DNA from: Bugula neritina | Taxonomy: Eukaryota; Animalia; Bryozoa | Direction: 5' to 3' | NCBI GenBank assembly: GCA_964035545.1 | Contig: OZ037771.1 | Span: forward strand, 1,623,628 to 1,687,627 | DNA: 64,000 nt | Shown: in pieces, positions 8,140-63,668 of the stretch | Layout: every line of letters starts with the position of its first letter | Position numbering within the stretch: the stretch's first letter is position 1 | The notes under the pieces: model-generated | The model's database searches: none | The model's input: the letters and a program-made list of their open reading frames with translations, nothing else | Told to the model about the DNA's origin: nothing | Translations under genes and position numbers: made by a program

Positions 8140-8275
8140 TGTGTGCGTGTGTGTGTGTGTGTGTGTGCACAGTGTGTGCGTACAGTGTGTGTGCGTACAG
8201 TGTGTGTGCGTGTGCAGTGTGTACAGTGTGTGCAGTGTGTGCAGTGTGTGCAGTGTGTGCAGTGTTTGTGTGTGT
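7710..8275. repeat. Compound (GT)n microsatellite interrupted by GCA/GC units
   Basis: Visible tgtgtgcagtgtgt arrays; source of spurious HT/CV ORFs. Confidence 0.97.
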
Positions 8276-9346: not shown

Positions 9347-9575
<229 letters not shown>

Positions 9576-30145: not shown

Positions 30146-33100
30146 TTAAATGTACATCTCCCAAGTTCCATCATCTTTCTCTTGATTAATCTGATTTTGT
30201 TTTACTAACACATTTGAGTATTTTAGCTGATCAGTTTTGGCTGCTTTTCGATTTCGATGCACCAGACCGGCCATTATGATGAGGAAAATGACCACTGCTG
30301 TTGTCACCAAGATGGCTGCCAGAATACCGTAGTCTGCCTCTCGAGTGTCTGATGTCGTCTCGGCTGACCCGGATGAACCACTGGGGGTTCTAACTTTAGT
30401 GTCAGCACTGCTTAGTTTAACTGGAGAACCAGTTGCATCGTTATCATTGGGAGTTGTTTTCTCTTTATTAGGGGAAGAAAACTCCGGAAATCCACCTACA
30501 TGCATACAATCAATTATGTAAATAGAAGAACTGCATATAAAAATACTTGCTGAGAATTTATTTTATTTGAGTTTATAATCGTTTGAAGGCAAATTGCAAT
30601 TGCTTTTAAAGTTAGGCTTGAATCCGCAGTTCTTCAAACAGTACAAGACACACCAACACACAGCCCTCAGGCTGATAGCTTTACTTACTGTAAACACAAA
30701 CAGCGGATATCTTTGGCTCCCACATTCCTTTATCGCTACATGTGTACTTCTGACCCACTGTGTGATTTACAAGGTCGTATCCATGACGACAAGATCTAAT
30801 CTCCACTATTGCCCCTTCAGTGTACATGTCACCTTTCCGGTTTCCGTGAAACACTGGCATTCCACAAGACACAACTGAAATCGAAGATGTAAACTTGCGC
30901 AGACTTGTACAAATATTTAGAGTTGATTCATTGGAATATTTATAACTATATAAAGTTACAAGACACTTTAAGAAACGGCAATACTTATGATGTAAAAATT
31001 TTGCATTTTCAATTGCACTGAATTAAAATTATTAAAAAATGTCATCTTGTCTTTAATAATCATTCATAGACCATAGTTATGAATAGTAATATTTCAAAAC
31101 ATCTTTTTTAGCTTATATACAGAATCTAGCAGGTATAAAAAGAATGCAATTCTCTCTAAATAATAGAACAGTATGTTTTAAAAGTTGTCCATTACTTGCT
31201 GTGCACAAATATACTTGCAGATCTCATTGGCAAAATACACAAAATAGATAGTAAATTAGCCTTAGAGTTTCAAATAGACTTGATGCTAGTTGTTAGAAAC
31301 TTATTGAAGTGATTTGTAAATCACTTGATCTGAGGCTACACATTTTAACCAGAGTCTCTATTAACTAGCAAGCATCAACGTAAGCACTTACCTGACTGTG
31401 AGTATTCGTCTAAACTAGTCATCCAATCAGCAAACTCAGCAGCTCGCGATGTCACTTTCTGGGAATCATAGGCTTTAGCTGAAACTGTCTGTTTGTCGGA
31501 GGCAGTAAACATTGAATGACCCGGCATGATAAAAGCTAAAACATACACCATATACTTGAACATGATGTAATATAGAGGGTATTATTGTGATATGTATCCA
31601 CAGTATAAAACAAACATGTAGTTTGTATATTGTGACATAACATAGACTATTGTGTAATGCTTATACCATCTGTTAGTAAAGCTCCATCTGCCGTCTTTTC
31701 CCAGGCACCCAGTAAAGACTTCGAATTCAAATAATTCTGAAAAACCAAAAATATTCTATTTTACTTGAAAATTTTTGTAACAATTACATATTTGTAGAAT
31801 AATCTGTATTGAAAATGGTCGTAGCCTGTGAGAATGTTAACTCACCTGAAACGACTCAGGCACCGTGACTAAGATATCTAGGTTATGTTTAGTGGCAGTT
31901 ACTCTGATGCCAACACCACAGTATAAGGTCAAGGTGAAGTTGGAATGATCTGTTACTGGCTTCTCGTTCCAGCTCAAGACTTTTAGACCTACAGAATGCA
32001 ACGCATCAGTCACTGTGTTTGTGGTGAAGATGCCACCTACTTGACGGTGAAGGACGTTAAACATTGCAGAGTTATTGCTCCTTTATAGGAAACTAGACTA
32101 GAACTAGAGTTGTGTGCCCAGTAATACCACAGGTAAAATTGTAGGAAGCAGATATTGAGATTCATTGAGAGTTTTGAGATAAACAGCTGTTTAAAATTTT
32201 TAGAGCTGTTTGGGTGTGAAGTCATGACCCAATCCCAACTAAATGAACCAAATCTACAGATAGGCAATTTTCAAGTTTCATTATACCCTATAAAATGTGT
32301 GCAGCACTATTGTAGCTAACCTTGATATTCTTGTTTATACCAGGCAGGGTCAGTGAAGTCTCTCTCCACGTTGTCTACTATCAGTTTAGATCTCAGGCTA
32401 TCATCATGCTTGTTTAGAGTGACCTTGACTTGGCTGGAGTTGTGGGTTTTGATAGCGACTGCCGACACAATGGTGGAGCCGGTCCCAGGGACTGTTGAAT
32501 GAATTAGACAACGTCACTATTGTGTAACAGTGGCAAGATCCCTTCAGTTGTTTTTATAGAGTTTTAGAAAAAGCATTTCTTAGAATTTTCCCATGAGGTG
32601 TTAGCTAGTTCTGTTAACTGTACTTCTAAAAGTTAACAAGTAATTACTCACTAATACTGAGTAGAATTACTCACTAGTACCAAGTAGAACCACTCACTGG
32701 CACTGAGTTAAACTACTCACTAGCACTGATTAGAACTACTCACTATAGTACTAGTTGGACTATACTCACTGGTACTGAGTAGAACTACTCACTAGTACTG
32801 ATTAGAACTACTCACTATAGTACTAGTTGGACTATACTCACTGGTACTAAGTAGAGTTACTCACCAGCACTGAGTTGGACATGAATATGTAAATCTGTTG
32901 AATTTTGAGACTTGAGAAGTGAGTATTCCCCTTCCAAACTGGGCAGTTTCACGCTGCTTTTATCAGCCAACGTCGTAACATGGGTTGCTCCATAAATAGC
33001 AGCTAAAAATAGAAATCAGATTTGTTGTTGAGACGTTATTTATTGTGTTGGATTAGCTAAAGTATATATCTATCTTGAAATTTCGCTTTTCCCAAACAAT

Positions 33101-34539
33101 TTTGAAACTGTAAAACAAAAAGTAAATGTAGATTGGCAATATTGCTTCCTATCGACTAATACTTATAGACTGAAAAGTTGTCTTTCTAGTAAATAAAGAC
33201 AACTGGCTTTAAGCACAAATTAAGTTGCAGTTGAATACTCAAGTGCTACTCAAGCGCGACTCAAGCGCGACTCAAGCGCGACTCAAGCTCACCATGCCAA
33301 TTGCACAAACCACAAGTGAGTTATATCAAGTACTAACACCGGAGCATGGGAGCTGATATCAGAGTTACCTGTAATCTTATAGCTCAAAAATTATCTGTAT
33401 CTTACTTACAGTTTTAAAAATAGATGTGGTTGACCAAAACACATACATGCAATATAAAAGATATAGCAACATACATCAACACTGATATAACGACAGTACG
33501 GTGGTAAAATTACATCGTGGAGGCTAATTATTGTATTAACAAAACTCTAAATAGGAGGTCTGAAGAAGCACTGATTAATGAACTTTAGATAATGCTGTCA
33601 TGCAAAGACTGTATAAAAGACAATATATTAATACATTATACAAAGACAGTATACAAAGACAGTATACAAAGACAGTGTGCAGACACAGTATACAAAGGCA
33701 GCATACAAAGACAGCATTACTATTTCAAACCTTTCTCTATTATTTCCTGATCAGGTGGCGGAAAGCATTGCTATACAATCACTAAATACGCCAGATATGA
33801 ATTACTTACCAGTTTTGATTCTCTGGTAATTCTTGCAGTCCTTAGTAGGTCTGAGATCCATATAGATGTTACACGTATCATTCAGACTGTTCCACAGACA
33901 GCAGTACTGGTACGTGATCACATCTAGTAGCCAGTGGGACAAGCCTGGCACTAATCCTGGGGAGTTGTAAGGAAGAGCCCCTAAAGAAAGCAATTCGTAT
34001 TGGTTCTAGTCTAACCTACTTGCAACTGATAATCTTCTGAAACTGTTTGTGAAGCTTGCCTTGACAACTCTAGTCCTAGACTCTCATGAAGTGAATAAAC
34101 AAGTTTTCAATTATCATAATTTTAAAACTTCTTCAACTTCATTTACACCAAATCTTGTATCATGCAGCATATATATGTGTCCCATTATTTGTTGTATAAA
34201 TGTAAAACAGCTCCTTGAAGATGCTCTGTTGTCAGTTTTTCCTTTTATCAACATAAAACATACTATTTTTCATGACGAACGAAACACCATGCCAGTTTTA
34301 CTCAACCATTATTTACAGTTTTTTCAATATGACAGAATAAGCGCTGGGTAACAGAAAACTCTCGGATGATCTGGTTTACACGGTAACTCACCATCATTGT
34401 GACTTTTATCAACAGTGGAGCCGTAGATAGAGTCTCCAGCGTAGATGAGATTTCCATCTGGTCCATAGCAGCACTGGGTTCCAGCACCAGTTGGACGTCT
34501 GCAACATTATCTCATTTATATGTACATTATGTCATATAG

Positions 34540-34571
<32 letters not shown>

Positions 34572-37103
34572 TGAGTGAGTGCGTGAGTGAGTGTGTGTGT
34601 GCGTGTGTGTCTGTGTGTCTGTGTGCGTGCGTGCATGGTCTACTATAATAAGCTGGTAGAAGGCACATATCTGTTTGACTTAACAAAATACAATAAGTAT
34701 AAGATTCTGTTTCCAACACATAGTGGGATACGATCATGTACAGAGTGTTGTAAGATGCCATAGAGTCGGATATTTAAGATACTAAAGCTAGAGGAACACA
34801 ACTTGCAGATGATTAATTATTAAATGTCATCTAACGTTATGCCATAGAAGAAAAACAAGGTGCAGCATAAATTAGACAGCTTAAGAGATTTAGACCCAGT
34901 CACTTTTGAATACATTAACTTTACTTCATTGTACAATTTTTTATTTGTTATATAAAGCATTTGACATCCATGTGATTTGAAGTTCTATGTAATAAATTAA
35001 AAATATATTTCAGACTATTAAATTTATGTGTCCTATAGACTATGCAGAATATACAAAACTTTCTAGTAGCTCTGGTTTAGTATGCAATTTAGCATAATCC
35101 AACAGTTAATAAAAATTTGCTGTACACATGCAGAAATTCAAAAAGTGCAAATTATTATCGAATGGCAATGATCACAGTGAACGTATCATATTTTCATAGT
35201 CAAGTCAATTTGCAGCTCTAAATGAACCAATACAAAACCGTCATGCATGTGGAATTTTCACTTTGTTGTTAACCCTGATAATTTGCAAAGAGAAGCTTCT
35301 AGAATGGGGTTTTCCATTTTCCAAAGTACTTGGAAAGATAGTACATTACATTATGGAATTCCCACTTTCCAAGAGTGCATATATGTTATATATAAGGACT
35401 TGGCAATTAGCTGCCCAAGCATTTTGCTACATTGGAGCTAACAGTTACCAGCTTTGACATCACAATGACCTCTGACAACGATGCAGTGAGACTTTATATT
35501 GAACGCTATGTGAAACAGGATGCAGATGTGTCATCAAAGCGTAGAGGTATTTGCTATAAAAGAGAGATCTGTATAATCAAAAATAGAAACTTTTGTAAGT
35601 CAGTATTTTTCAATAACATTTTATAAATTAATTTCTTTGAAGGTGGCTTGTTTACCACTTTTCATAGAATTATTTTGAAATAATAAATACATTTTAAGAT
35701 TATGGTTCAATTATTAATAACCTTATCATCGACTGACTGCAAGATTGAGAGTATTATTATTGACTGTAAAGCTTTTTACGCTTGATTTTAGCTGATTACA
35801 TTATCCATGAGTTGACCAACTTTAAAATTTAAAATGGCTCTCACTGAAGCATATATGTGAATTACAACAACCCAAAAACTATTATATTGCAGCAATCATC
35901 ACAGATGTGATTCATATAGTTCGGGCAGCAATTCCAGATGCAGACCAGGTTGAGTACCTCGGCAGCAGTTACGAAGGAAATGCCACAAAAAACAACTCGG
36001 ATTTTGACGTAACCATAAACATCGCTCCAAGAGGAAGTCAGTTTCGGGCGGAGAATATTCCAGGCGAGTTGGGATATGTAAGACTAAAGCATCTAGGTGG
36101 TGGAACACACGAGTTCAATTCTAAATGTATCAAAGGCGGATATTTATCTGGCAAAGCTGTCATGCAAAAAATAGTAAGTGGTTATCTACCCAGAGTGTTG
36201 AATTTTTATTAAACATAGTAGTGAAACACTGAATATATTTTAATATTTATGAAAATCTTTTTGCTGGCAATTAAATTTTAACATTCTGTATGAGCTATAT
36301 TGCCACCGTTATTATATAAACGCATTTATTATTACGAACGATGAAAATAGTGTAAGGAATTTGTTTACTATCAAAGTGCAACTTTTCTTAGATTCAGTCG
36401 TCACTTGACAAACTGAAGCATCGAGAGGGAGGATATATGCATGTGCAAGGCGAGCGAATCAAATTCAGCTTCTCAATAAGTGGTCCAGCCGTTACAGTCA
36501 ACTTGAGTTGGGGCGGTAACCGTATGCAATTAGACGTCGTAGCTTCAGTTTATCGCGATCACGTTGTTGGAGGAAGAGATGCAGACTACGTTCCTAAACC
36601 ACCCAACAGCACTGTAAGTTGCAAATACATTCACAATTGGTAAGACAATTCCAAAATATTTTACTTTACATTTATTGTGTAGCAAATAAGTTTGACTAGG
36701 CTAGTACTCTGCACTGCTGAGTAAGTAAATACGCATGTAAGAATTTAAAGTTCAAATCTCACTAATATGGCCATATTTTCCTTTATTTATGTTTGTGGTA
36801 TTAGAGAAAACCTTGTTGATTAATGTGCATGTATGTTGAGTTAGATGGTTTGCTAATGGCTAAACTGTGTAAACCATGGTGTTTATAGGCACCATCTTCA
36901 GACGACAACTGCTGGAGACAATCTTTTGCTGTCGAACAAAAATCTGTGTTCACAGGAGTAGATAGAGGTAACCTGGTACATAGAGAAGCTATCAAAGTGG
37001 TCAAGACTGTCGTGAAAAATGATCCTGTTTTATGTGAGTATAGCAGTGATCTTTAAACTAAAGATATTTAGGGAATATGCAGAACTGAAGCTATTTTGAA
37101 TAA

Positions 37104-37182
<79 letters not shown>

Positions 37183-40100
37183 GCGGTGTATGCACCCTGC
37201 AAGTGCAGTTTGTATATGTAGCCGGTAACATAAACATAAAAGAAACCACCAAATAATTGCTATCACAACCACCAATATAGTTTATAGACTATATAGTTAT
37301 AGTTAGAGTAAGCCTAAAAGTTTGGAGACTGCATTTATTCATCACAATACGTACTCTTATGTTGAAGCATTCGAGATGTTTTAAAGTGATATTACATTCA
37401 AATTTTGAGCCAAATGTCCATGTTATTCACTCTAGGGGACATGCCATCCTACGTAGTGAAAACTGCAGTTTTGATACTGATTCATAAGGACGAGCAAAGA
37501 GTCAGTCAAGGGGCTGCCCCGAAATCATAGGACGCTGCTCACACCGCTGATAGAGTGCTGGATATCGGAAAGGTAATAAACATATGACCAAAGTTGAAAG
37601 TTTTGAATTTGCAACTCACTTTCCTCAGTAATTTATAGTTAGTAGCCAACTAAAAACAGCTTGTGGAGCTAATTAGGTTTAGTGGGTGACTTCGACATCA
37701 ACACTTTCTAATTCAAAACTTAGTCCTAAGGCTAAACTATATAAATGATTTTGTCCCCCCCCCCAGTATATAAATTTGCAAATGCCTGCTGGCATAAAAA
37801 GCTAATATTGATAAAAGTATATAAAAATATATACTAACACCCAGAAGAATCAGTTTAGATCAGATGTGGATGTTGAGCAATGTTATCATGATTGAAGGAG
37901 ATGTATGAAGGCTTATCTAGAGGGGATATGAGAGATCCTCTCAATGGGTCTGAAAATATCCTATCAAGAACCTCTCTCCCTCAAAGAACAAAATGGCGAA
38001 ATGGGATAGAGTGTGACGGCCGGGGACTTATCAAAAAGATCAGAGCCAAAGTTGGTCTAATTAGATAATCTTCAAACAATGCATATTAATTCTACACTTT
38101 TGTTAACGAATATTTGTCTATTATCATACGCATACTTTTATTTAACAACTTATTTTAATTTTGCTGTCATGGTATCATTTGGTTTGTGCTGCAGTGTACT
38201 TGAAGTAAAGATATTGAAAACATTACGTGTGTTGAACTTTTAAACCTTTCATAAACCTGGAGATAATTTATCTTAGGTTAACCTTTTGCTTGTCTTTACG
38301 TCTTATTCATGGTTGTGGAGTTGTTAACTCAATGTGAAAATAAGTACTTTATGTCATCCCATCAGACTCTTCCATTTCATTTTTCAACCAAAACTCATTT
38401 GAATTTCATCTATCAAGCCTCGGTGTGTTCACCATGTGAGTATTAGATACAGTGAATACAGCTAAAGTATGCCAGGGCTAATAATGTACCCAGCAAAGAA
38501 TATTAATATTGTCTTTAGATGATGAAATTGACTCGCATTTGAATAGATTTGTCTAAAGAAATTTGGAGAAAAAGTTTTCAATAAATCAAGAACTTGGTTT
38601 GTTTGAGTGGTTGCTATGCTAGCAGTGAGATTTTAAAAAGCAGAGCAGATTTTTAGCATGAAAAACATTGTAAATATAGCTTTAAAAGTGAGTAACCCTG
38701 GTGCCCGACACCCCTATAGTACTGCATTTACCCATAACCATTTAATATGTATAAGATATAATTATTATTGCACAAGGTAGTTTAGAAAGAAGACAACTAC
38801 CACTAAAGCTCAACGAACAAAATTTCATGAACATTATCTAATAGAAATAAGCTTTTATCACTGAAACCTAACTTCAGATGAGTTGCTATAAAGAGGATAA
38901 CAAACATTTGATATCACAGACACAGAGACGAGTATAGAGTAGCAGTAAGTGAAAGAGTATGATTTTAGTTAACTTACGATGGCCAAATAGATCGCACACA
39001 GTGTTCTGCTGTTTGGTGGTAGTAACAGTTGTAGCTTGACTTCTTGTTGTACATGTTGCAACTCGGGTCAGGTACAAACCTCCCAATATCCGCAACAGCT
39101 TGGTCCTTAGTACACGGGCAATCCTGGATAGTTATATACAAGTGTATTGGAGCAACTAAAATAAGCTGTAACTTCTGCTTAGCAAAATTTATTATTGAAA
39201 AAATAGTTTTTAACATTTAATTTACTAATTGATAAAAGATGAAAGAAAAAGAAATATAAAAGCACTAAAACTAAAAATAAAATTGCAAATTATTTTGAAA
39301 CTTTTTACATTTTATAGCACCCTGTTCATAACTTTATAGTAGGAAACACAAAATGAGAAATGCACGAGATGGCAATCCTACCTCAAGTTCATTCAACCAA
39401 TCAGAGCCCTCCTTTGTTTCCTTAACAAACCAATTATAGCATTCTCTATCTGGCCAGATATTACCATCTTTACCTTGTCTTAGCTGATGGTCTACATACC
39501 AAGCTAGGGGGCCTTCCTTAGACCACAGTCTCCTATGTGAACCAATCATATCAACTGTTACATGATTCTGAATACTCACAGCTATTCACGCTATGTTAGT
39601 TTGATTGAAGACCTGTCAGAAACTTATGTGACAACAGAAATTAATTATTAATTTATTTGACCAATCATAACAGTTCTAGCATTCTCTTAACCAATCACAG
39701 TGAGTGTGACGTAGAAAAAGTTACAAGATATTCAATTAAAGTTACAAATTATGGCAAAAATTGTATAAAAATCAACAATGCAAACATTTTTCCAAACGAC
39801 TTTTAAATGAAAAATCTTCATCAAGCAGCATTAAACTTGATCCTAAAAATCAACTTTAACTTTAAACTAGTAGTTTTTAATACAATGATTCATATAAATT
39901 GAATATTTTATTTAAATAAACCTAATAGCCTCTAACTTTTTAACATTTATAAGTCACTTGGCCCAAGTACTTATATAGTCTAAGTCTGACAACTCCAAAA
40001 AGCAATACATGATAACTGCATATCTTGGATTAGTAATACAAAAAAATAGTATTAGAAATAGCAGTATTAAAAAGAATAATACAAATACTTGTACTAGTGA

Positions 40101-43100
40101 TACTACAAGTACTGGCACTAATACTACCAGTACTGGCACTAATACTACAAGTACTGGCACTCACCCAGGGTGAAGTGAGTCAGGAGTGTCAGGCAACTCC
40201 AAAACAACTGCACCCAGAATCTTATCTCTGCAATTAGTGTTGCATCGGAACAGTGAAGAGTTGAAACTATAGGAGCCAGTGTTTGGTACGTTTTTAGCAA
40301 TTGTCAGCTCCTCATTCCAACTAAAGTACTAAAAAGATGCATTTTATTCAAAAAAAAACAAGTAAACATCAAACAAATCTAATAGCTATAAAGACTCACA
40401 TGAAAATAAAAAGGCAGTTAGCCTGTTGTATACATGATATATATAAACTGAAATAAACATTTAAATGAATAACCTTAAAACAAAAGTTGCTTGTAAAAAC
40501 GATTGCATTATTTAGTTTATCTAAAAGTTAAACTTCAATTACTTAGCATTAAAACTGCAGCTCAGGGTTTACTCACAGATGCATTTTCTCTGTAAGTGAA
40601 GATTTTCAGGTTTAGACTCCCATTATATCGAGACAGGGTCATAGGGTCCCACTTTAGCTGTAAGTTAGACTGTGGTCTAAGAGACCTCCAATTATCTGTG
40701 TCTAGTAGGTCTATTGGAGCCTTCACGCCATTGGCTAGAGTGAAAATACTTGCAACTTTTATAAACTTCTCATTAAGTTTACACCATGACAAAATTCAAG
40801 GTTGATTATTTGTGAAGTAAAATTTCAATTATTGGGTTTAACTGCTTTTTGTTAATTTTTTTTCATGCCAGCAGTTTTATTTCCAAAAGATTAGAGGCAT
40901 CAGTGCAGAAGTTTTGTTTTCTAAAAGTTTATACATAGCCCTATGTTTTGAGAATTTTCTCTTTTAAGAGAACGGGTGCTACCACGGTCAAACAGTAATA
41001 TTTTTAACTTTCAAACTAAAAATAATGGCTAATCACAGCCTGTAGCCCCTGTGACTTCAAGCACCCAGCATACAATGCTACGCATACTACATTATCAGTT
41101 TCTACAAGATATTACTTGTAACCTTGTAACACAGGCTAAATTACATGATGACAACTTCAAAAAAGCTACCAGTTTCTGGTTCGAAAGTTTGGCCTCTCCA
41201 AACATATTTCACAACAACTTTGCTTATAATATTCTGCAAATCAAACTATTTCTAATTATGTAGAAGCAACTTACATGAAAGGTAATAGATGTCATTGCCT
41301 TTGACCTCCACACCGCCAATCTTTAGTTTGAACTCGTGCTGTTTGTTAGCGTAGAATGTTGGAGCGTAACACAACACCTTTGTTGAGCTGAGATACAATC
41401 CCTTTACACTCTGCAGAAATGAGAAATGTTTTACTGCATATGAAACAGTATAAACTTTGATCTGTTTTAACAAACTAATATTTGAACTTAATATAATTAA
41501 CTATAATGTTATATTTAACTCTTTAGGAGAGTTTTTATTGCATTCTGTTGAATTGCTTTTAGCATATGCAAATTTTCAAAGCAAACCTACAATATTTCCT
41601 AAACAAATGCTATTCTGTAAACTAAATGCAACTTTCAGCACTAATCATTTTTCTACAATTGGTATAAATAAAGCCCAGCATTTATTGAGACTTTCCTCTG
41701 TCATACCTGATTCCCAAACTGACACTCTATAGTCTGGTGAGGCATGAAACAAGCACCTGCCACTTCTACAGGATTTCCTCCAAACATGTGACCACTGGAT
41801 GGTATCAGTTCTATAGACTGAACTGCTGTAATTACAATCTCATGGTGTGACACTTTTGACATTGGTATGTGACACATGATATCAGTGTGTGACACATGAT
41901 ATCAGCATGTGACACATGTGTGACATCACTATGTGACACAAAGCATCACTATGTGACAAGTAATTCGACACAAACTAATGGTTATACAAGTGGAAGCTAT
42001 AATATTTCTCATGCTACACATGAATACCTGAATTCACTCCAGGACACGTGTGCTCAGCAGTAGCGACTTTTGATATCTCATAAATGTACTGTCCAACAGC
42101 GTTACTACCTCGTACCACATCCAGGTCAAGGACATTGCTTTTATTGTTGAGGTTAATAAAACCTTTGCCATGGCCAATGTTGATTCCTGCCTGAAATGTG
42201 TATACGTTACTTGTGGAGTGTGAACATATTAATTGTACAATGCAATATAGTATAATATAATATACAGTACAATATAGTATAATATAATATACAATACAAT
42301 ATAGTGTAATGTAATACACAATAAAATATAGTATAATATAATATACGATATAATATAGTATAATATAATATACAATATAATATAGTATAATATAATATAC
42401 GATATAATATAGTATAATATAATATACAATACAATATAGTGTGATATAATATATTATTCATCATATAATAAACATAATTTAGAAATGCATCAATAGTAAT
42501 AATATATAAAATAAAGTATTTTAAGTAACCTGTGCAGGTGGGTTGTCTGCCCCTACACCTGTCTTGGCATCCCCACCATTAGCGTGTCCTCCAGTCCAAA
42601 CAAGACTCTTGTAGTTGAAGACTGCAAATGTAGACGTGCCATTGGTGCAGATAACCACTTGGAATGTATTTCTCTGTAAATATGTAATGATATTTTATTT
42701 CTTAACATAGAGGGTTGCATGGATTCATTTATATTTCTTCCAACTGTTAGAAAAGTAAGCCCAAAAAACACCAGGTGCAACTGTTATAGAGATATGGTTA
42801 ATACATCATTCAACTTGAACCAGAGAGGAAGGTGTGTAAAATTTGATTAATTTTCATAAAATGTTGATATGATGTATTGACATAGTTTTAAAATGTTTAA
42901 TCATGTCTCTTAATGTGCTAAAATACACATCTGTAATTTCAAGTTTGTAAAGTAAAACAACAATACTCTGTCTGTATACTATTTGAATTGTTAGTCTCAG
43001 TACATGGGAATACACACTTACTGGGTAGGGCATAGCACTGGGGTCTCCTCCATAAAATGATATGTTAGCCCACGAGACAGCCAACAGATGGGTCACAGAA

Positions 43101-44548
43101 TACGAGTTAGCTCCTGGTATATTTGCTCTTATTAGCGAGTTTAAATCAGATGTCGAGTTTGAAGTAAGACTCAGACTGTAGGATACTGAGGCTAGACTGT
43201 CACTACAAGGAATTAATGAAGAAGATGTCACTTTTTGTGAATTATTGGTTAATACAGATGACCCTCTAAAGAGGGGACAACTACCAACCTTTCATCTGGC
43301 CTATACTGCATTCTAGCTCTGAACGGAGCAATCAGTGTGGGATCGCTGTTCACATCATCTGCAGGGTAGGTGAGCTTCTCAAACTTTTTTACCTCTTTTC
43401 CAAAAGAGATATAGCCGTTAGGAGATACCTGTGACAGTAAGATATATAAATATTATAGATAAGTTTGTTTGTATTTGTATTTTGGATTAGGAATGATAAA
43501 GGTTTTCGTAAGATTTGATATGAATCAAGTTCAAGCATTCTGCGACTAAATATGATATCAAGTGTTTGTATAGTACAATGCTATAAAATAAATATCTCCT
43601 TTGTTTTATATAGAGCAATTTTTTTCAGATAATTTTAGAAGTATTTCGGGACACTTTGGATTCAGTGCACACATAATAATGAGTGAGCCTGTTGAAAAGA
43701 CAATTCCAAAGTTAAAAATTGAACTCATTTCAAAAAAAGGTAAAATTATACCAAGTAATGATCAGCAAGTTTCTAGTTTAGTATTTAGGAGGGCAACTCC
43801 AATTAGTAGAGCTATATATATACATTCTATATATAGCAACCATGCTACTTGTTCAAATAAAAATCCAGTTTTACCTATAATAAACTAGTTTTCTCAACTC
43901 TACAAACAACAAGACTCACCCAGACATTGCCACCAGGGGGCAGGGTTGTCTCAAACAATGAGAGTTGAAAGGGAAGAGTGACAGATGCCCCCGCATCTTG
44001 ATACTTTGGGAGAACTTGGGGACTAGCCAAGGTCAACCAAGACGCATCTGTAACCAATTTATAAAGTAATATGATGTAGAAAAAACTGAGCTAAAATTTG
44101 TTTATAGTAACCATAGTAGCCTTTGTGCTTTTAGAAAAAAGCCTAAGTTCCAAGGATTAACCTATGTTCAAACTGAAATTTGACATACTGGTGAATTTCA
44201 ATGCCGTAAAGGCCAATATCAAACTGAAAGTTGCGCAAATTTCAATAAAACAAACAATTTATCTATAATTCAATGAGAAAGCAATTCCTGTAGATAAAAA
44301 TTTACTTTAAATAATAGTTTTAATGTCTTTTATTAATTTAGCCAGACCCCTTTTTGCTAAGGAAAAACTACAAGCTTTCAGGTATACTTGTTAACTCGAT
44401 TGTTGAAATAAAATAAAAGCTTTTAATAAAGTTACTGAATGTAGTGTTGGTAGACTGCAGCATGTTTACCTGCTGAAGAATGTTTACCTGCTAGAGAAGG
44501 TGGTGGAAAGAGCAAAACTACAACTAGGAAGGCAAACTGCTTGTCCAT
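30146..44548 (-). CDS. Mesh/SUSD2-like type I membrane protein (signal peptide-NIDO-IPT/TIG-AMOP-VWD-Sushi-TM)
   Basis: About 20 exons. Signal peptide MDKQFAFLVVVLLF (44488-44548); NIDO VSPNGYISF, LIAPF, RNTFQVVICTNG (42530-42673); IPT PSSGHMFGGNPVEVAGACF (~41707-41826); AMOP DCPCTKDQAVADIGRF (38978-39123), GAGTQCCYG (34392-34498), YQYCCLW; VWD from ~33002; Sushi SCG..CRHGYDL..TCSDKGMW (~30688-30874); TM GILAAILVTTAVVIFLIIMAGLV. Some internal boundaries are approximate. Confidence 0.92.
32646..32880 (-). repeat. ~23-26-bp minisatellite made of a SUSD2-like exon end/5' splice-site junction
   Basis: Ten ACTCAC (GTGAGT on the minus strand), each next to a variant of the exon end; the real donor follows 32865. 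Confidence 0.92.
35250..35396 (+). promoter_or_regulatory. Candidate promoter of the nested cGLR gene: HSE + kB sites + TATA
   Basis: AGAAGCTTCTAGAAT (35291-35305, nGAAnnTTCnnGAAn), GGGGTTTTCC (35306-35315, GGGRNNYYCC), GGAATTCCC (35355-35363), TATATAAG (35389-35396), ATG at 35465. Confidence 0.65.
35465..38068 (+). CDS. cGAS-like receptor (cGLR; Mab21/cGAS-family nucleotidyltransferase), ~345 codons, one in-frame TAG in this sequence
   Basis: Phase-consistent GT-AG exons 35465-35546, 35893-36173, 36392-36613, 36889-37033, 37436-37572, 37898-38068. Motifs: YLGSSYEG..SDFDV, SGPAVT, QLDVV, YVPK, CWRQSFAVEQ, PSYVVKTAVL, ENIL. TAG at 37528-37530 (codon 275). Confidence 0.9.
37107..37177. repeat. 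(GT)n microsatellite in cGLR intron 4
   Basis: Perfect GT run. Confidence 0.97.
42240..42455. repeat. AT-rich degenerate minisatellite (~25-bp unit of 5-mers)
   Basis: Repeats of aatatagtataatataatatac. Confidence 0.85.
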
Positions 44549-45488
44549 TCTACAGGTGAGCTGTTGGTTAACTGATTCTTTAATCTATCTGTGAAATATT
44601 GTAACTATTTTATCTTCTAAACAAACAGAAGCTTTAATCCGTTATTCTATTTGAATATGATCTTTATCACAGTGCTACTGGAATCTCTCTGCGCTCTCTA
44701 TATACCGCACGAAGTTGGCAAGCTAACTAAGTATTATAGCAACTATGTGTCATTCAGCCTATGAGAATGGAATTATATCTCTAGGTAGTTTCTTATCTAA
44801 AACCAGCCAATATATTTGCACAAAATCTTAATAAACTCTCGAAAAAAATTCATGCTGGCAGTTAGTTTTATACTTTATAAAATAAAATCATATATAGACT
44901 ATAGTTGATATTTGATAAGTTCTTTAGTAAAACAACGTTATGTAATATTACATTGCAAGTTTTCCATTTGTAGAGCAAATAAACCATAATTTAGATGTTA
45001 TTTACATATAGGCCTACCTTGTGCATTGTTATTAACCAACAGTGTCAACTAAATTCTATTGTCATATGCCTTATTAAATTATTTAATTTGAACTTATTCA
45101 CTTATTCTAGATAAAATATAAACAATTTTTGCTTCAAGTAATTTTCCATTATTTATGGTCTTAGGTCTATTATTTGGTCTTATACAGTTATCATTCATTT
45201 CCTTAGCCTGCTTCTCTTTGCTATGCAGCGAGTTTGACAATAATGTACTGAGTAAGTTTTTGACCATTTGGCACTTCATATGGCAATAAAATATTTAAGC
45301 CTGTATGTGTTTATGAGCAGCTCTTTTTATGGGGGGGGGGGGGGAGCCTAAATGCACAAACAATAAACCTTCTTTTGATTGTTTGCTTAAGCATTGCCAT
45401 GATCAAAGTTCAATAGATAGTATGAAACAGTCACTCAGTTAGTGTTACTAGCTGAAGTTGCCTAGTATACCAAATACACAGCATAGCC

Positions 45489-48400
45489 ATGCTTACAGGA
45501 GATCTAACTTCTCTGGTTATATTCATACCATCTTCAGTTCTTGTAGCTCTCATTGGCTGGTATGTTTATTGGAAGAACACCAGAAATAAGATTCTCATAG
45601 ACAATGTGCCAGGGTTCAAGGACTGGCCTTTGGTTGGGGACATTCTACACTTAGAGAGAGATCCTACAGGTAAAAGGATACGATTGTTATAGAGTGAATT
45701 AATTCATGGTAAAGTTTTGACTAGAATGCAGCTTAGATTTGATGATGAAATGTTGCATATTCAAGGTTTACTCTGACTATTAGCAGTGAGTATGAATTTA
45801 CTACTAGATTTCCTTCAACAACTGCTAAAACTTGCTGATGTAAACAGATTCCACAAGATATTGAAGCTGAAGTTTCTAGAACTCCCACAGATAATGATAT
45901 TCTCAGCAGAAGATATTGAAAAGCTACTCAGCAGTAAAGTGAATATAGACAAGTCTCCACAGTACAGTGTGGTACACGGGTGGCTGGGGTTAGGGAAAAC
46001 TTGCTAGTTACTAGTTTAAGGTCTTTAAGTACATTTAATGTCTGTTGAGTTGTTTGAAAGTTAAATATGCCTGCGTTGTTGGTAATGAAATAAGAAATTA
46101 TAACTTGTAAACATTTATTCTATAATTCAATGTCAAAGTTAGAAAATATAATATAATACAATAAAATATGACATATTATAATATAACATGATATAATGTA
46201 ATAAAATGTAAATTTGCACAGAGTTATAATAAAAAATATTTTTAATCTGATCACTTACAAGAATTGCAGTTTGATAATCTGCCTTTATTGACGATTAGAA
46301 TCTTATAACCAAACGAGCCAATTAAATATAAATGTCCTTGTTTAGTCACTTGCTTAAAAGTCCTGTGATTAGCATAACTCAATACAGACAACAATAAGAA
46401 GGCAGTTGGTTGTAAATTATTGTTAGATTTGCAACTAGAAAGGAAATAGATCGACTGGTGCTTTTTTGCAGTTCAGGAGCAAAGTGGAGAAGTAGACGAA
46501 AGATGATAACTCCAAGCTTCCATTTTTCTATCCTGAAGGAATATCTGGTATTGATTAATGAACATTCTAGAAAACTGAGAGACAAGCTTCTTCTTGATGC
46601 ATCCGACAACGGCCAATCATATGACATCTACGAAGATGTTACATTGAATACTCTTGATATAATATGCGGTAAGAGTAATTCTGATTGGTTGGCTGTCTGG
46701 CTGGCTGTTGGTAATAGAAAGAAGATGGTGATTTGCTAAAGCTAAAAAGCAGAAGTTGTCAAGTATTTCAATCAACTCCTGTTTAGAAACGTTTGTTAAT
46801 TTGTAAAGCTAGTCTGCGTAAAACATTTGCCATGGTATATACCTCTGATTTGCGTTGACAGATACAGCTATGGGTGTGAACGTGAACGCACTAGCTGGAG
46901 GCCAGTCGGAGTATGTAGATGCGCTTCAGTTAATTAAAGACGAGACAATAGAAAGAGCGAAAAACCCTCTTATCCTTCCCGATGTGACTTTCAACATGAC
47001 TGCTGCTGGCAGACGAACTAACAGAGCTATCTCTTTGGCTCACAAGTTTACAATGCAGGTTGGATCCACACTCTTCTAGAATATTTTTGGTAGTAAGTAG
47101 TCTAAAAACCTTTAAACATTTGTGAAACCTTGTTTTTAAAGTCAACATTTTTGTTTTCTTCCAAGCAATGAATAAACGTGTTCAAACTGGGTGTAAAATT
47201 AGAATCTGCATAAGAATTATTGGCATGTCATTTAATCAAAATTTGGCATGAAGTTGGCCAGCCTATTCAATTATAGGTAACAGAAAGACAAACACATTTA
47301 CTTGTAGGTGATCAAAGAGACAGGTAATAACAATTTACTTGTAGGTAATAACAATTTACTTGTAGGTAATAACAATTTACTTGTAGGTAATAACAATTTA
47401 CTTGTAGGTAATAACAGTTTACTTGTAGGTAATAACAATTTACTAGTAGGTAATAACGATTTACTTGTAGGTAATAACAATTTACTTGTAGGTAATAACA
47501 ATTTACTTGTGGGTAATAACGATTTACTTGTGGGTAATAACAATTTACTTGTAGGTAATAGGGGAAAGAAGAAAAGCTAAGCATAACAAAGAGAGTTCGG
47601 AACCAGCCAATGCAAAGCATAAACCATTCCTGGACCTTCTACTAGACTGTACAGATGAAGATGGACTTCCTTTAACTGACTCTGATATCAGAGAGGAAGT
47701 TGACACCTTTATGTTTGAGGTAGGAGTGTTGGCAGTAAGGGTATCAGCAGTGTTTGATAAAGTGTCAGCAGTGTTAGATAGAGTGTCAGTACAGTTAGTT
47801 AGAGCACCAATATGTTTAGTGAAGGTATCAGCATTCTTGTGAAAACTTGGTGCTAATAATATTTTCATGTCGTCAATATTTGCATATGCAAAGCCCTGCA
47901 CAGAAGTTTAATTAGCTTAATAGCCTGAAAGTTTCCAATTGATTACAGGGACATGACACGACGTCAACAGCCATTGGCTTTGCTATTCATCTCTTAGGTA
48001 GTCATGTGGAAATACAGAAAAAGTGTCAAGAAGAACTGGATGAGGTTTTGGGTATAACAAATAGTGTATTGTGATAAATATCATTTAGGTTCTAAATAAA
48101 ATAAGATACAATGCTACACAGGCACCTACAATGCTACACAGGCACCTACATAATGATAATGTAATGTATTATATCATAATATTGTAATATATTATTATAT
48201 CATATTATAATATATTACAGTAATGTAATATATCGTATAACAATATTATAATACATTGTACCATAATATTAAAATGTATTCTATCCTATTTTTATCTACT
48301 CTTCAATCACATGCAGTTAGTTTGTATACATGTATTTATTATAATAACTGCATCACCAGTTTTTTAATGTTTCTTCTGTTTTAAAAACCAAAGACAATTT

Positions 48401-49774
48401 ATTTCTCTTTTGTATCTGGGTACAAGCAGTTAAACTATTGAACCACTAAATAAGGTTTGCACTAACACAGCTATTGTATTGATTCCACACTCTACAATGT
48501 GAATACAATTATTATGCTATTCTAATCCTACAGGAGATACATCTGATGGCCTTTCTGTTGCTGACCTATCAAAGATGACCTATTTAGAATGTTGCATAAA
48601 AGAGACTCTGAGACTATTTCCACCTGCAGCTTTCCTCGGCAGATCATTGGCTGAAGATACAGAACTGGGTGAGTCTTCAGATAAACACTATCTCATGACT
48701 CATCATTGTTCCCTGTGATGTAATTCTACTTTGATGATGTAATATGTTATTTACTCTGCGCTCGTATGTGCACTGTTTTGTAGCCTTATAGTATTTTTCA
48801 AATTTGCTAAAAATGTAATAAAAATCAGCAACATCTACATGTAATTTTGATTATTTATATGTTTTAGTATACAAATGGGAATGTGCTAGCCATATACTAT
48901 AAAATAAAGGTTTTCATCATAACTATATTATATATAAATTAAGATAACTGATGTATCTGTATTTGATATGCTCTATGCCTTTTGCAGCTGGATATACAAT
49001 TCCTAAAGGTGTTTCTGTCTTAGCGTTTACTATGGGCTTACATCGGGATCCCAAAGTCTTCCCAAATCCTGAAAAATTTGACCCAGATAGATTCATGGCT
49101 AAGAACTGTGTTCAAAGGAATCCATTTTCCTATGTCCCCTTCAGCGCTGGACCAAGAAACTGCATAGGCAAGGGCTGTTGACAAATTTTATTCATACTGG
49201 ATTCCATGTTGTCTGCAGTGTTTTTAGTCAGCTGCGTACACTTATTCACTTATTAGCACATAAGATGTTTTCCTAAAAATTTAAACTTGCTATGCAACTT
49301 TCGGTTGTAACATTTAGTAACATCACCAGCTGTGATTCTGCACGGGTAGCCAGAAGTGAAAAAATAAAATCTGACTTGAAATTTGACACCACATGCTATT
49401 TTCTTGCTTTAATTATTTCTGCAGACTCTATTTTGTGTAATTACCTGACGGATGGTGTGAATTTCTTAGCTATCAACAGCTAATATAATTTGGATTATAA
49501 ATCACTTTAATTCAATAATTTTAGCCAAGTTTGGCTTCATTGGCTTATGGCTTTATGCTGTTAAAATTTAATATCTTTCATAACTGTTGAGACTTGCCTG
49601 GTATTAATTTTAGGACAGAAGTTTGCTATGATGGAGATGAAAGTTCTACTTGCTATGATACTACACAATTTTACCATAGTTTCCACACAGACCGAAAAGG
49701 AACTTAAAGTTCGCCCAGCCCTAGTCTTACAGCCTTCCAATGGAATATTAGTTAAACTTTACAAACGAGTTTAG
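45489..49774 (+). CDS. Cytochrome P450, CYP4 clan (CYP4V/4C-like)
   Basis: Exons 45489-45669, 45809-~45990, 46472-46668, 46862-47058, 47555-47719, 47949-48051, 48534-48668, 48988-49167, 49614-49774. Motifs: N-terminal anchor, [52 protein letters not shown]. The exon 2 donor is unresolved. Confidence 0.95.
47297..47560 (+). repeat. 21-bp minisatellite (11 copies) made of a CYP4 intron/exon acceptor junction
   Basis: GTAATAACAATTTACTTGTAG units from 47324 to 47554; the real exon starts GTAATA at 47555. Confidence 0.95.
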
Positions 49775-50133: not shown

Positions 50134-54038
<3,905 letters not shown>

Positions 54039-57973: not shown

Positions 57974-60900
57974 TCAGCTGGCTTCTAGCCTGAACAGCTC
58001 CTCAAACTCAGCAAAGCGAATATCTAAATACTCTTTGGTGTTGAGAGGAGATATTCTACACAGTCTAATTCGCTGATCTTTCATGTGTTTGATGCAATCA
58101 TCCCCTAAAAATAAACACAAAAACTTAACATGAAATGTGTAGAAGGTTGCGCCTGTTCTCATCATCACATAATCCCTAAAACTATATAAAGGAGCCCTGG
58201 TTACAGTTTGTCACTTTCACCAGCTAATCTACATGCAGTATCTTTGTAGCTGTCAGACAATATGACACTGGCCACTGTCAGAGAGAAAATGACCTACTCA
58301 ACAGTAAACAAACATATTGATTTATTGTGAACTTGGCAGGCTTGAAAAAGAGTAAAACTTTGCCACGACTGAGGCAATAGAATTGACTATTTTCTGAGAA
58401 ATATTATATCGTGTGTATATAATAAATATGAGGAATATATAATATGTATACAATAAAAATGAAAAATATATCATATGTGCACCATATAGATGAGATGTAT
58501 ATATCATGTGTATACAATATATAATACAGATATAATATATATAATAGAGATATAATATATAATAGAGATGGAGAAGAGAAAACAGGAAATGCTGTACCCA
58601 AATCTGGATGAAGCTCTAAGTGAAGAAATTCCCCTGGTCTACATAACCCTTTATCAAACGCTGTCGACAGCCTGTTGACAACTTTCCGATCAATCTATCA
58701 ATTGTAAAGAAACATTCACTCTACAGAGTCTCAGTAATGCAGGAGTTGATCCTAATCTGTACCCTGGTCTGTTTTTACAGATTGATATCGTGTAAACTAA
58801 TACAAGGTAAATATATTATTGTTATCAAATACAAAAATATGATGTTATAATATACATTAATATAATATATACAATAAATAATATATTAATATAATATATA
58901 CTAATACAATATATACTGATATAATATACACTAATATAACATATAATAATATATACTGATAATATATATAATGATGTAATACTGCAATGTCACATACAAA
59001 ACACACAGCTAGTCTGTAGGTAGTCTGTCTGTTTGTCCACAGCAGAATAATTTAATAAACAGGTAAACCGAAAAGATACCTCGTGTCGCATATGTCTGGC
59101 GCCATATGATTGGTTGAAGGTTTTCAGTAGAAAGTCGTAGAGAGAGGAGTCCCAGGTCAAGGTTATTCCGTGATTCTTAGCTGCGAGAGAGCGAACTTGA
59201 CATAGCTGAGTTTCTATGAGTTTTCTTTGTTCAGCCTTAGAGAATGGAAGGAATATAGCAAGTTCATTGATCCTTCCCAGTAATTCGTCTCTTTTAAAGG
59301 CTTTCTACAGCATAAATAACATGAAACTACAGTATACATCACATACTACAGTATACACTACATAGTACAGTATACACTACATACTACAGTATACACTACA
59401 TAGTACAGTATACATTACATACTACAGTATACACTACATAGTACAGTATACACTACATACTATACAGTATACACTACATACCACACTACATACTACAGTA
59501 TACACCACATACTACAGTATACACAACATACTACAGTACACACTACATACTACAGGATACACTACATACTACAGGATACACTACATACTACAGTATACAC
59601 TACATGCTATACAGTATACACTACACACTACAGTATACACAACATACTACAGTATACACTACATACCACAGTATACACTACATACTACAGTATACACTAC
59701 ATACTACAGTATACACTATATGCTATACAGTATACACTACATACTACAGTATACACTACATGCTACAGTATACATTATACACTACAGTATACACTACATG
59801 CTATACAGTATACACTACATAGTACATACTACATATTTACCCTCAAAGGTCCGTGAAGAAGCCGAGACTTGAAGTAATGCACATAATCTTGCATCCGGTT
59901 GTTGTTGCCACTTTCAATAGACTGAGGACTGAAGAATTTTCTGAGCCCGTCTCCAAAGTCTTTGATCTGGTCTATGGCTAAGTTGGCAGTGAGAACAAAC
60001 ACAGCCTCAGGACAGTCTATACTCTTACCGGAACCGCTGGTTAACCGCCCCTCATCAAATAGCTAGAAAAGTAAAGACCACAGGCTAAGCAAAAACTCAA
60101 TCTAAATTTTCTGTTTATTAAAAAGCATACAATTTTTACGATAATTCAAATATAAATGTGAGAAAACATAATAAAAACATGAATTCTTAATACAAAGTAT
60201 GTTAGAATATATTTTCATAGCTTATAAACAAAGTAATTAGAATGAGAAAAATAAATATTTCTTATGGGACTTTCAAAGACTATTTTATAAAAGTCCAGTT
60301 AGACTTCAGCTTGGTTTTACCTTGCCAAGAACATAATAATAGTAGAATACCTGCAACAGAGTGGTAAGCACGTTAGGGTGGGCCTTATCCGCCTCATCAA
60401 ACAGCACCACAGCTTTAGGATTCTTGGCTAGGAGAGAAATTAGCTGACCGTCACCTGATTCGCTGTAACCTACATAGCCCGGTGGAGACCCAATAAACTT
60501 GGCAGCCTGTAACAATAGACTGTAATAATAACTACATACACCAAGTCTACTATCTTGTAGACCACAGGCTAACCACATGCATATAATATCTCATTAAAAA
60601 TACTATTTCTAATATTCTACACAATAAATTCTAAAATGTATATCAAAAATAAATTAAAAACAAATAATTTTTCATAATACAAATCTTTATCTTTACTAAC
60701 TCTAATATCAAAACTTGTTTTATTATTCTAAGAGCAGCTGAGTTTCTTCAAATGAAGTTTGCAAAAGATAGGGAGATGTTTAGCAGTCAGACTGGCCAAT
60801 GAAATACCTCGTGTTCCGTCTGGTACTCCGACAGATTCACGTGAACAAAGCTAGTCTTAGAATTACCCCGCAGGTACTGGGCAAGACGCTTTGCCATTTC

Positions 60901-63668
60901 TGTTTTACCTGCAGAAATAATGCACAGATTAAGGCAAACTGATTTAAAAAAAAGTAATGGTAGAGCTAAGAGTTGCAAACATAAAAGTCTAGCAAGTTTT
61001 CCTTATGCAGTTTACAAGTTTTACAATGATCACTCATAAGAAATCACCTAATCCAGTAGCTCCAACAAACAGAAGCACCATCGGGTGTTTACAATTGGTC
61101 CATCCCATCTCCAGACGATTCACAACTGCAAACACATGTGTGACACTTCAACACTATTGAGTTACTAGACATTTACTAAACGACATAAGCACAGAAGTAG
61201 AAGTGTGTTAATATTATTATAAGTACGAGCAAAATTGATGATTAAATAAGTAGTATAAAAATGAGGAAAATACTTATAATATTAGTAAAAGAGACAATTA
61301 ATAGAAGTGACTGTCAAAGCTTTGTAAACCAGTTAGTTTATCTAGTTACAGAAGGAAACAACTCCCTATTGACTGTCTCACCGCTGGATACTTGCTCTAT
61401 GGCTAATTTCTGTCCAACCAGCTCTGTGGTCAAAACCTCTTTCAGATTTATATTCCTAAATACTTCAGAGTTTCTCTTTTTCTTCCTCTGAAAACAACGA
61501 ATAATTTATCCAAGTATTCCATAAAGCATATAACCGATAATTAATAAGCAATAAAAGATGTCTTCGTGTAGCTTAAAGCTAGAGGTAAATGTCAAGGACA
61601 CAACGTAAAAAGTCAGAGCTACGGGTTATTTAAACAAGCTGCCTTTACCTCAGCCTCCAGGGTCAATATTTGTGCCTTAGACTTGTCACTTCCCAGTTCA
61701 GCAGCCGTATAGCCTTTGCCATTCTTTAGTGACCCATCAACACCTTAATAGTAGAATCAGTAAACAGCATAGCATTTAGTAATGTTTAAGAGTCATCCTC
61801 TCTACAAGCTCAACAAATAGCTACTCAAATGTAGTGTTTGATTCATCAAAACTTTGAGTTGCAGAAAAACTAACTTAACATCAAAATTCTAAAATAATTA
61901 TCAAGAGCTTGTTGTTAGCAGCAGACCCATTATTAGCTGACAAATTTGTTTTTCTCCTTATTTTCTTTTAGCAAAAAGTCTCTGTTTTTTCAAATATGAA
62001 AATGTTAAAAACATTATTGCAAGTACACAGTATACATATGTTTGATTAAAAATATTGTCTATCATATCATACTGTGTAAAAGATGACAGACAGGTGGGCC
62101 TACTTTTAATGGAAATATTAGCAATTAAATTAAAAAAGTGAAAATAAACTGTTAAACTGCCTTGTGGGACATAGACTGCATTGCTGGAGAGAAAATGCAT
62201 TGTGGGACATTCACCATATTAATAGAGAAAATGCATAGTGGGACATCTACCGTATTGATAGAGGAGAGAAATTAAAGAATGGTGATTCATGAGGGAAGCA
62301 TAATGGAGGGCAGAACATCCGGCGAATGAGACCTCTTCATCTAAGTCATCACTGAACTCGAGCTTCCTGGCAGCCATTGCTGTAAACAGAATCAGTACGA
62401 TGCCTTAAAAATAGACAATAAATATTTATTAAAAATAAGTATTTCAGAATTAGATAAAGATTAAATTGTAATTTATACATAAAAGTAGACACGTGAGATA
62501 AATGATAGTTCATAAAGCAAACATTACTAATAAAAATGTTCAAATTTAACAATGCGGAAACATAAGAATAGGTAATAGGAGAGTGCGCAAAGAGAGCAGT
62601 TTGAGGAGTATGTTGTGATTGTGGCCAAAAGAATATATAAGACTATGAATGACCTATATAAGACTATGAATGACCTATATAAGATTATGAATGACCTATA
62701 TAAGACTATGAATGACCTATGTAAGACTATGAATGACCTATGTAAGACTATGAATGACCTATATAAGACTATGAATGACCTATATAAGACTATGAATGAC
62801 CTATATAAGACTATGAATGACCTATATAAGATTATGAATGACCTATATAAGACTATTAATGACCTATGTAAGACTATGAATGACCTATATAAGACTATGA
62901 ATGACCTAAATGACAGAAGTTGAGTCTCACATTTAATGCTGTTGGAGATGTTAAAGATTTTGTTTTCATTTTTCTTCAGAACAGGGTTGTAGTCATCCTG
63001 GATGTTAGGATCAGCTCCTGCTTCCAGGAGTAATTCCACAGCTCTGTGAGGCAGAGGGAAGATAAATCCCAATGAGATGTGTGCAGGAGATGAGATGAGT
63101 CAGAATATGTAGAAAGGTCAATATCAGTGAGCAGTTATGATAGAACTTATATTCAGAAGATATGACAGATTAGATTAGAAAGTAAAGTGGGGGTGTATCA
63201 GCTATAGATAGACTGCAGACCAAGCATACAATATATTAATGTAGGAAGTGCGAGAGAAAACACTAGTCCTGTGTAATACTTACGGCACATGCCCATTAAC
63301 TACTGCAGTCATGAGAGCAGTCCAGCCATATTTACATTTCTTATCCAGCTCTTGACCTTTGGCTATGTAACTGCAAACAAAGATTACAAAGTGTAAAAAT
63401 TATAAAGTAGAAAAATGAACTACTAAATTAGCGAGAAAATCATAAGTCTATTTTTACCTGACATATATTTAATCACTTGAATGTACTGCTATGAAGAGAA
63501 AATAAATTCACACAAAAAGATTAATATTTTAAAATTTTGATTACATGTTTTGTTTAGACAAACTAAACCTTAAAATATGATTTAATGTGAGAACAAATAT
63601 AATTAATCTGCGTTACCTTTCAATGGCCCTTACATCACCAATCTTACAGGCTGTCAAAAACGCATCAC
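57974..63668 (-). CDS. CLPB: Ankyrin-repeat AAA+ ATPase, CLPB/Skd3-like (5' end not identified)
   Basis: Ankyrin exons [36 protein letters not shown]; Walker A GATGLGKT; pore loop [11 protein letters not shown]; Walker [12 protein letters not shown]; [10 protein letters not shown]; Arg finger [10 protein letters not shown]; sensor-2 YGAR. About 13 exons, stop at 57974. Confidence 0.9.
59327..59832. repeat. ~19-bp minisatellite (CATACTACAGTATACACTA)n filling a CLPB intron
   Basis: Visible tandem array with variants. Confidence 0.95.
62635..62908. repeat. 21-bp minisatellite (ATATAAGACTATGAATGACCT)n, ~13 copies, CLPB intron
   Basis: Visible tandem array; source of spurious [14 protein letters not shown] ORFs. 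Confidence 0.96.

Follow-up and report, generated by a model that had tools for sequence, protein, structure and literature searches.

The window analysed here is a stretch of 64,000 nucleotides from the bryozoan Bugula neritina (GenBank assembly GCA_964035545.1, contig OZ037771.1, positions 1,623,628 to 1,687,627 of the forward strand), and positions below are counted from its first letter unless another contig is named. At 35465-38068 its plus strand carries six coding exons of what looks like a gene for a divergent cGAS-like receptor (cGLR), and the whole of this nested gene lies inside a single intron of a larger minus-strand gene, which we call the host gene. In a sister lineage represented by metagenome contigs (chiefly two, L004 and L029) all six exons are intact, whereas the copy in the window is interrupted by an in-frame TAG in exon 5.

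Every acceptor of the nested gene is AG and every donor GT, and the exon phases chain as 0, 1, 0, 0, 1, 0 to give a coding length of 1,038 nt, or 345 codons and a TAA. The first-pass annotation of this DNA had described six phase-consistent exons wholly within 34499-38977 that encode a protein of 345 amino acids; the exons and their placement hold, and the 345-codon chain stands as a chain, although codon 275 is TAG and the frame is thus not open, at which that annotation hints only in the term 'Trp-restored'. The features of the nested gene are as follows.

35465-35546, plus strand: exon 1, ATG and 27 codons, ending in phase 1; donor GAG/GTATTT; L004 keeps the ATG and the exon at its bases 18-99, with 89% amino-acid identity.
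35893-36173, plus strand: exon 2, nucleotidyltransferase core, with the G-S activation-loop motif at about residues 51-52 and D-F-D at about residues 64 and 66.
36392-36613, plus strand: exon 3, which encodes the GPAVT strand and, within QLDVV at about residue 169, the third Asp of the catalytic triad.
36889-37033, plus strand: exon 4, WRQSF motif, ending in phase 1 on a T, to which exon 5 adds the GG of a split TGG codon.
37096-37191, no strand: (GT)n microsatellite in intron 4.
37436-37572, plus strand: exon 5, SY..KT motif with the in-frame stop inside the exon; donor AAG/GTAATA; length and splice sites as in L004 2132-2268.
37501-37506, plus strand: cryptic donor-like GTCAGT (AGA/GTCAGT), which would remove the stop in frame and leave 321 residues.
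37898-38068, plus strand: exon 6, the C-terminal 56 codons and TAA; its ortholog is L029 103-264, with 87% identity and the acceptor kept.
38580-38585, plus strand: candidate polyadenylation signal, the first AATAAA 3' of the stop, found by pattern scan.

The intron that encloses this gene interrupts the AMOP domain of the host. Its reading frame is continuous across the 38978/34498 joint, and the intron, predicted from sequence, runs GT to AG with consistent phases.

34499-38977, minus strand: host intron of 4,479 bases enclosing the entire plus-strand gene; donor CATC/GTAAGT at 38978/38977, acceptor TTGCAG/ACG at 34499/34498.
38978-39216 (upper boundary not fixed), minus strand: host exon with AMOP positions 21-68, Pfam AMOP E 6.7e-14.
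34327-34498 (lower boundary not fixed), minus strand: host exon with AMOP positions 71-109, Pfam AMOP E 1e-5.
34528-34640, no strand: (GT/GC)n microsatellite in the host intron.

The split falls at AMOP profile positions 68/71, and positions 102-143 are on a further exon. NIDO exons at 42524-43452 and a Sushi exon at 30684-31022, both on the minus strand, together with a hydrophobic segment within 30149-30562, give the host the predicted architecture of a NIDO-AMOP-Sushi-transmembrane gene, similar to SUSD2 or Mesh; a von Willebrand factor D domain (vWD) gave no Pfam match in the two pieces of the host that were searched. As a rough bound from the open pieces, neighbouring coding pieces elsewhere in the host are all less than about 0.8 kb apart, which makes the 4,479-base intron an outlier and agrees with the earlier claim that the remaining host introns stay under about 1 kb.

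We reached the sister lineage in two ways. The Joint Genome Institute (JGI) metagenome contigs L004 and L005 were found through the closest exon-2 fragment, at 90% identity, and L029 and L030, which come from the same two samples, were recovered by a protein search with exon 6, an exon for which the first metagenome scan had given no match. Bases 1-68 of L029 are identical to bases 2450-2517 of L004, and the two contigs together tile the window from 35448 to 39277. Across this tiling the sister lineage has six intact exons of the same lengths as in the window, save that its stop codon comes two codons earlier in exon 6, and its start codon ATG and ten splice sites are all in place. Exon by exon, by the method of Nei and Gojobori, divergence between the window and the sister lineage over the six exons is 0.33 per synonymous site (dS) and 0.054 per non-synonymous site (dN), a dN/dS of 0.165. 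Exon 6, which lies 3' of the premature stop, is constrained like the remainder, with 14 synonymous differences at 38 synonymous sites and 8 non-synonymous differences at 124 non-synonymous sites. When amino-acid changes were polarised with outgroups, 6 were derived in the window, 1 in the sister lineage and 15 were left unpolarised; we considered relaxed constraint in the window copy on this account, and the polarised changes are too few for such a claim.

Chance open frames in a big intron are a rival explanation of the exons, and it is consistent with this idea that no window exon alone has a significant family match. The conservation in the sister lineage of the six exons, the splice sites and the start codon, at a dN/dS this low, refutes it, and exon-level relatives at 34-48% identity occur in five other assemblies with the same exon boundary at the end; we therefore regard the absence of a gene as next to impossible. 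Judged by the conservation of its splice sites, exons and start codon, the nested gene is real.

The antisense neighbourhood is likewise shared. About 760 bases past exon 6 the sister lineage has the host AMOP exon, on the strand opposite to the nested gene as in the window; this exon occupies L029 1029-1450 (minus strand), is the ortholog of the host exon 38978-39216, carries a precomputed AMOP hit, and represents the 3' side, the only side recovered. Since the antisense neighbourhood is present in both lineages it predates their split, at a dS of about 0.3, and any arrival of the nested gene in the host intron, such as the DNA-level relocation conjectured in the first-pass annotation, must be older than that split as well. 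A check for mobile insertion found no terminal or direct repeats and no target duplications flanking the nested gene. Genes nested on the opposite strand of introns are common in animal genomes, and the case described here resembles them in that the whole unit lies in one host intron which is enlarged relative to its neighbours; nothing special was shown for it, neither hallmarks of a mobile element nor a sign of the regulatory coupling to the host that the first-pass annotation had suggested as possible. The nested position is conserved, yet in itself not unusual. One further contig, L031 (ENA ERZ4903317, 13.2 kb), was tried as a relative's version of the host intron and rejected, for it holds bacterial-type genes there and no cGLR exons and is probably either a chimera or another gene altogether. 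In L031, alpha-amylase and histidine-kinase genes of bacterial type are followed up directly with animal exons from an AMOP gene, which are homologs of the downstream host exons.

The TAG that interrupts the frame occupies 37528-37530, as codon 275 of the 345, and the sister-lineage contig L004 has TGG (Trp) at the same site. The read contig assembled from the source DNA (run X1, the only run that holds the stretch in full) has only TAG at the site, at a depth of about 100, and the stop is therefore not a slip of the assembly. Run X2, a 'symbiont metagenome' run of 2016, is sister-lineage DNA, and in runs X3 and X4, which bear the same organism label, neither the nested gene nor the host exons were found. 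A 401-nt contig of X3 joins the 18-mers 37456-37473 and 37877-37894 directly, while its flanking sequence has no match in the locus; this joint is neither a GT to AG intron nor the junction of exons 5 and 6, and it is probably a chance or low-complexity match.

Whether the gene could work in spite of the stop depends on several routes that we considered together: a heterozygous or polymorphic stop, readthrough, adenosine-to-inosine (A-to-I) editing of UAG to UIG, which is read as Trp, or use of the GTCAGT donor at 37501. The stop is the single lesion of the gene, with the start codon and every splice site intact, and dN/dS 3' of the stop is as low as 5' of it, both of which speak for a gene still in use. 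The stop lies 42 nt upstream of the last exon junction, and the mRNA might accordingly escape nonsense-mediated decay, for which the mammalian rule is 50-55 nt. The GT that would excise the stop in frame is new in this lineage, as L004 reads CTCAGT at the same place. Against these points, the X1 contig reads TAG alone, although contigs drop rare variants and can hide a minor allele, so that a second TGG allele may be present in the sequenced animal, a consideration that tells against a null reading. The cryptic donor has C at position +3, which makes it weaker than the natural AAG/GTAATA, and its use would cost the protein 24 residues, the conserved Trp among them. Likewise, the RNA around the UAG folds like shuffled sequence, with no extra stability (z -0.21). 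Taken together, these observations make a gene that works despite the TAG a rather unlikely explanation, albeit one that deserves to be taken seriously.

The antisense layout allows for a more elaborate version of this idea, in which the amber codon acts as a switch. The cGLR mRNA, a perfect complement of intronic host pre-mRNA, would form long double-stranded RNA with it where both genes are transcribed, and ADAR, drawn to this RNA, could recode UAG to UIG (Trp); or else the lineage-specific GTCAGT donor could give a shortened isoform. With such recoding, the full-length sensor would be made solely in cells that transcribe the host adhesion gene. We consider such a switch very improbable.

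To place the nested gene in a protein family, scans, searches and folds were made exon by exon, and also with the homologous exons of relatives. When 1.84 billion representative proteins were searched by phmmer with exon 2 as the query, six exon-sized fragments of the same subfamily came back, together with one unrelated bacterial protein; the latter, P0007 (4,029 residues), is a bacterial cadherin-repeat protein and was rejected as a spurious relative. On the relatives' counterparts of exons 2 and 3, Mab-21 is the sole or best family match and the matches are collinear: the homolog of exon 2 in L011 aligns to Pfam Mab-21 (PF03281) positions 2-75 with E 0.014, and the homologs of exon 3 in L006, L009 and L002 to positions 80-131 with E of about 0.003. 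A paralog elsewhere in the same genome provides the second line of evidence. This paralog (L015 3123-5070, C2:10083122-10085069) has GS..DFD, a GPATT strand, WRQSY and SY..K..W, some of its intron positions differ from those of the window gene, and its successive exons match Mab-21 positions 75-132 and 159-193 and then Mab-21_C positions 5-56 and 57-99. Profiles built from the subfamily's exons with this paralog left out align to it by hhalign, with E 3e-5 for exon 2, E 4e-13 (probability 98%) for exon 3 and E 2.6e-6 for exon 4, and the paralog exon matched by exon 4 is itself the one that covers Mab-21 positions 159-193.

G23, S24, D36 and D38 of exon 2 are invariant in a 7-sequence alignment (A1), the third Asp (D48 of exon 3) is invariant in alignments A2 and A3, and WRQS of exon 4 is invariant in alignment A4; G-S, D-x-D and the third Asp do not vary within the subfamily, even in members with as little as 34% identity. 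In the Atlas, exon 2 has language-model features that fall in nucleotidyltransferase/Mab-21 clusters (0.94), and when the AlphaFold2 model of exon 2 was aligned exhaustively to 48,161 PDB representatives the top 8 chains all had the Mab21 fold, with Tribolium cGLR 7lt2, MiD49, mouse cGAS, MB21D2, Sp-cGLR1, Cv-cGLR1 and MAB21L1 among them.

Other results count against the assignment. Pfam gave no Mab-21 match on any window exon taken singly, and the matches on the relatives' exons reach only 15.9-19.9 bits each, below the gathering cut-off of 24.1 bits. The exon-2-only model is poor, with a predicted local distance difference test score (pLDDT) of 57.6; its Foldseek matches, nearly all of them MAB21L1, cGAS and MiD51, have E values of 0.5-5, and the top 8 fold matches, with 81-92 of 93 residues aligned, have Z scores of only 2.5-3.6. 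For the C-terminal exons, local alignment of exons 5 and 6 to the Mab-21_C exons of the C2 paralog gives p of about 0.02-0.03, and the Atlas feature search with exon 6 gave nothing usable. Other searches added little: exon 2 has a weak Pfam match to an MTPAP-like palm domain (E 0.0076), Mab-21_C has no match on exons 5 and 6 of either the window or L004, a genome-wide six-frame Mab-21 scan did not select the window, the exon-3-only AlphaFold model is a generic beta sheet with uninformative matches, and PDB sequences, when searched with the profiles of exons 2 and 3, gave nothing significant (cGAS 4jlx at E 0.4 and 9elx at E 1.4). With BLASTP, exon 5 aligned to nothing and exon 6 reached E 0.035, and the motifs visible in the C-terminal half are limited to S-Y-x-x-K-T and S-W. 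Because the sub-threshold matches are collinear and the paralog provides a link to the family, membership of the N-terminal core in the Mab-21/cGAS-like family is supported at the level of sequence; for the C-terminal half the similarity points weakly the same way. The first-pass assignment to the cGAS/Mab21 nucleotidyltransferases thus stands for the catalytic residues and the N-terminal core, whereas the C-terminal half is weakly placed and, as described below, the strict cGLR pattern is missed.

Animal cGLRs, as defined by Li et al. 2023, number in the thousands across phyla, and most consist of the core only, at about 350 residues (PMC9980059). Their catalytic residues comprise a triad of the form [E/D]h[E/D] ... 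[E/D] besides the G[S/G] of the activation loop, and this signature separates active cGLRs from Mab21L-type proteins (PMC9980059). The nested gene has these residues as G-S, D-F-D and L-D-V, and all the motifs named in the first-pass annotation (hGS-x-DhD, QLDVV, WRQSF and SY..KT) are found in it, as GS, DFD, QLDVV, WRQSF and SY..KT. With GS at about residue 51 the protein also has no N-terminal extension, as had been stated; calling it 'minimal' as if that were unusual does not survive, given that core-only receptors are the norm. The comparison extends to named receptors (Tribolium 7lt2, Stylophora Sp-cGLR1 8gjy, Crassostrea Cv-cGLR1 8gjw and Drosophila cGLR1), which the nested gene resembles in a core-only length of about 345 residues, in G-S, D-h-D and the third Asp, in the usual order of the GPAVT strand, W-R-x-S-F and S-Y-x-x-K-T, and in the presence of STING in the same genome. 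It differs from them in being very divergent, such that phmmer with exon 2 found no annotated cGLR, in a C-terminal bundle that is unrecognisable by sequence, and in that the copy here is cut by a stop. Compared with vertebrate cGAS, it shares the fold family and the layout of the catalytic triad, and cGAS is among the best fold matches of the exon-2 model, whereas it is without the unstructured N-terminal tail, has no stretch in which a fit for the Zn-ribbon insertion was seen, and shows about 10-18% identity in structural alignments.

The strict cGLR pattern, h[QT]GS X8-20 [DE]h[DE]h X50-90 h[DE]h (PMC9980059), is not matched by the window gene, which reads Y-L-G-S, X11, D-F-D-V, X100, L-D-V. 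Where the pattern has Q/T ahead of GS the window gene has Leu, and its spacer of 100 exceeds the published 50-90; both misses speak against a cGLR and in favour of a protein with the Mab21 fold that makes no cyclic dinucleotide, a member without enzymatic activity or with some other action, either of the MAB21L1/2 or MiD49/51 type or similar to those crustacean Mab21 proteins with roles other than nucleic-acid sensing. MAB21L1/2, MiD49 and MiD51, which do not synthesise cyclic dinucleotides, share the Pfam family and fold with the nested gene, and MiD49, MiD51 and MAB21L1 rank beside the cGLRs in the fold searches. Shrimp Mab21 proteins are described as acting outside the canonical sensing paradigm (PMC12928593). 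In contrast to MAB21L1/2 and MiD49/51, however, neither the acidic triad nor the G-S lacks a residue in the nested gene, and both are conserved, an argument in favour of an enzyme. The invariance of G-S, D-x-D and the third Asp across the subfamily is the signature of active cGLRs (PMC9980059), and other members of the subfamily carry T or C before GS. We therefore hold a non-synthase to be improbable.

A gene with the STING ligand-binding domain is present in the genome as well. Three minus-strand exons at C7:554398-556001 (loci L018-L020), on the same contig and about 1.07 Mb before the window, match STING_LBD at profile positions 1-20, 19-102 and 97-162 with 25, 53 and 36 bits, and by sequence they look like the genome's STING gene. 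Several other Mab-21-family loci are present on C2, C3, C7 and C1. Additional Mab-21 or Mab-21_C exon matches were noted at C7:5181652-5182906, C3:2585940-2587604 and C1:26553459-26553686, the last of which holds a TAA.

By analogy with known receptors, the intact protein is predicted to act as a nucleotidyltransferase that a ligand switches on and whose product, a cyclic dinucleotide, would be sensed by the STING of this genome. A single G-to-A change turns the Trp codon, TGG in the sister lineage, into TAG at codon 275, and the resulting stop takes away the final 71 residues, part of the helical domain at the C-terminus, which completes the caged active site. Since purifying selection lasted until recently, we favour a young loss: the locus probably holds a divergent, antisense-nested cGLR gene whose copy here is a null allele of recent origin or a pseudogene still very young, and no working sensor, a reading we prefer with some reserve. 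The first-pass annotation had suggested a compact, lineage-specific sensor and had noted that the cyclic dinucleotides made by animal cGLRs signal through STING; a STING gene is indeed present in the genome, while the premature stop makes a working sensor in this genome doubtful.

The rest of the window holds further genes. A cytochrome P450 gene of several exons lies at 45456-49771 on the plus strand, with its heme-binding exon at 48948-49178 (E 1e-25). On the minus strand, 50137-51447 codes for parts of another secreted or surface protein, with one PAN/Apple and one pentraxin-like exon, and a CLPB-like AAA+ gene at 58993-63099 has AAA_2 and ClpB_D2-small exons and, within an intron or exon at 62579-62920, repeats that are tandem at the peptide level. 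Microsatellites made of long (GT)n/(CA)n runs are found at 7637-8305, 9297-9622 and 52268-52791 as well as at the two positions listed above (34528-34640 and 37096-37191), and the read contigs break there.

Nothing at this locus opens a long-standing question. What it adds to a family already known to be large is a cGLR subfamily that is highly divergent, has had no annotation so far and is seen as exon fragments only, in a few holobiont and environmental assemblies. The intact ortholog of the sister lineage and the copy with a single nonsense change form a natural pair, which could be used to ask what role the sensor plays and what its loss costs.

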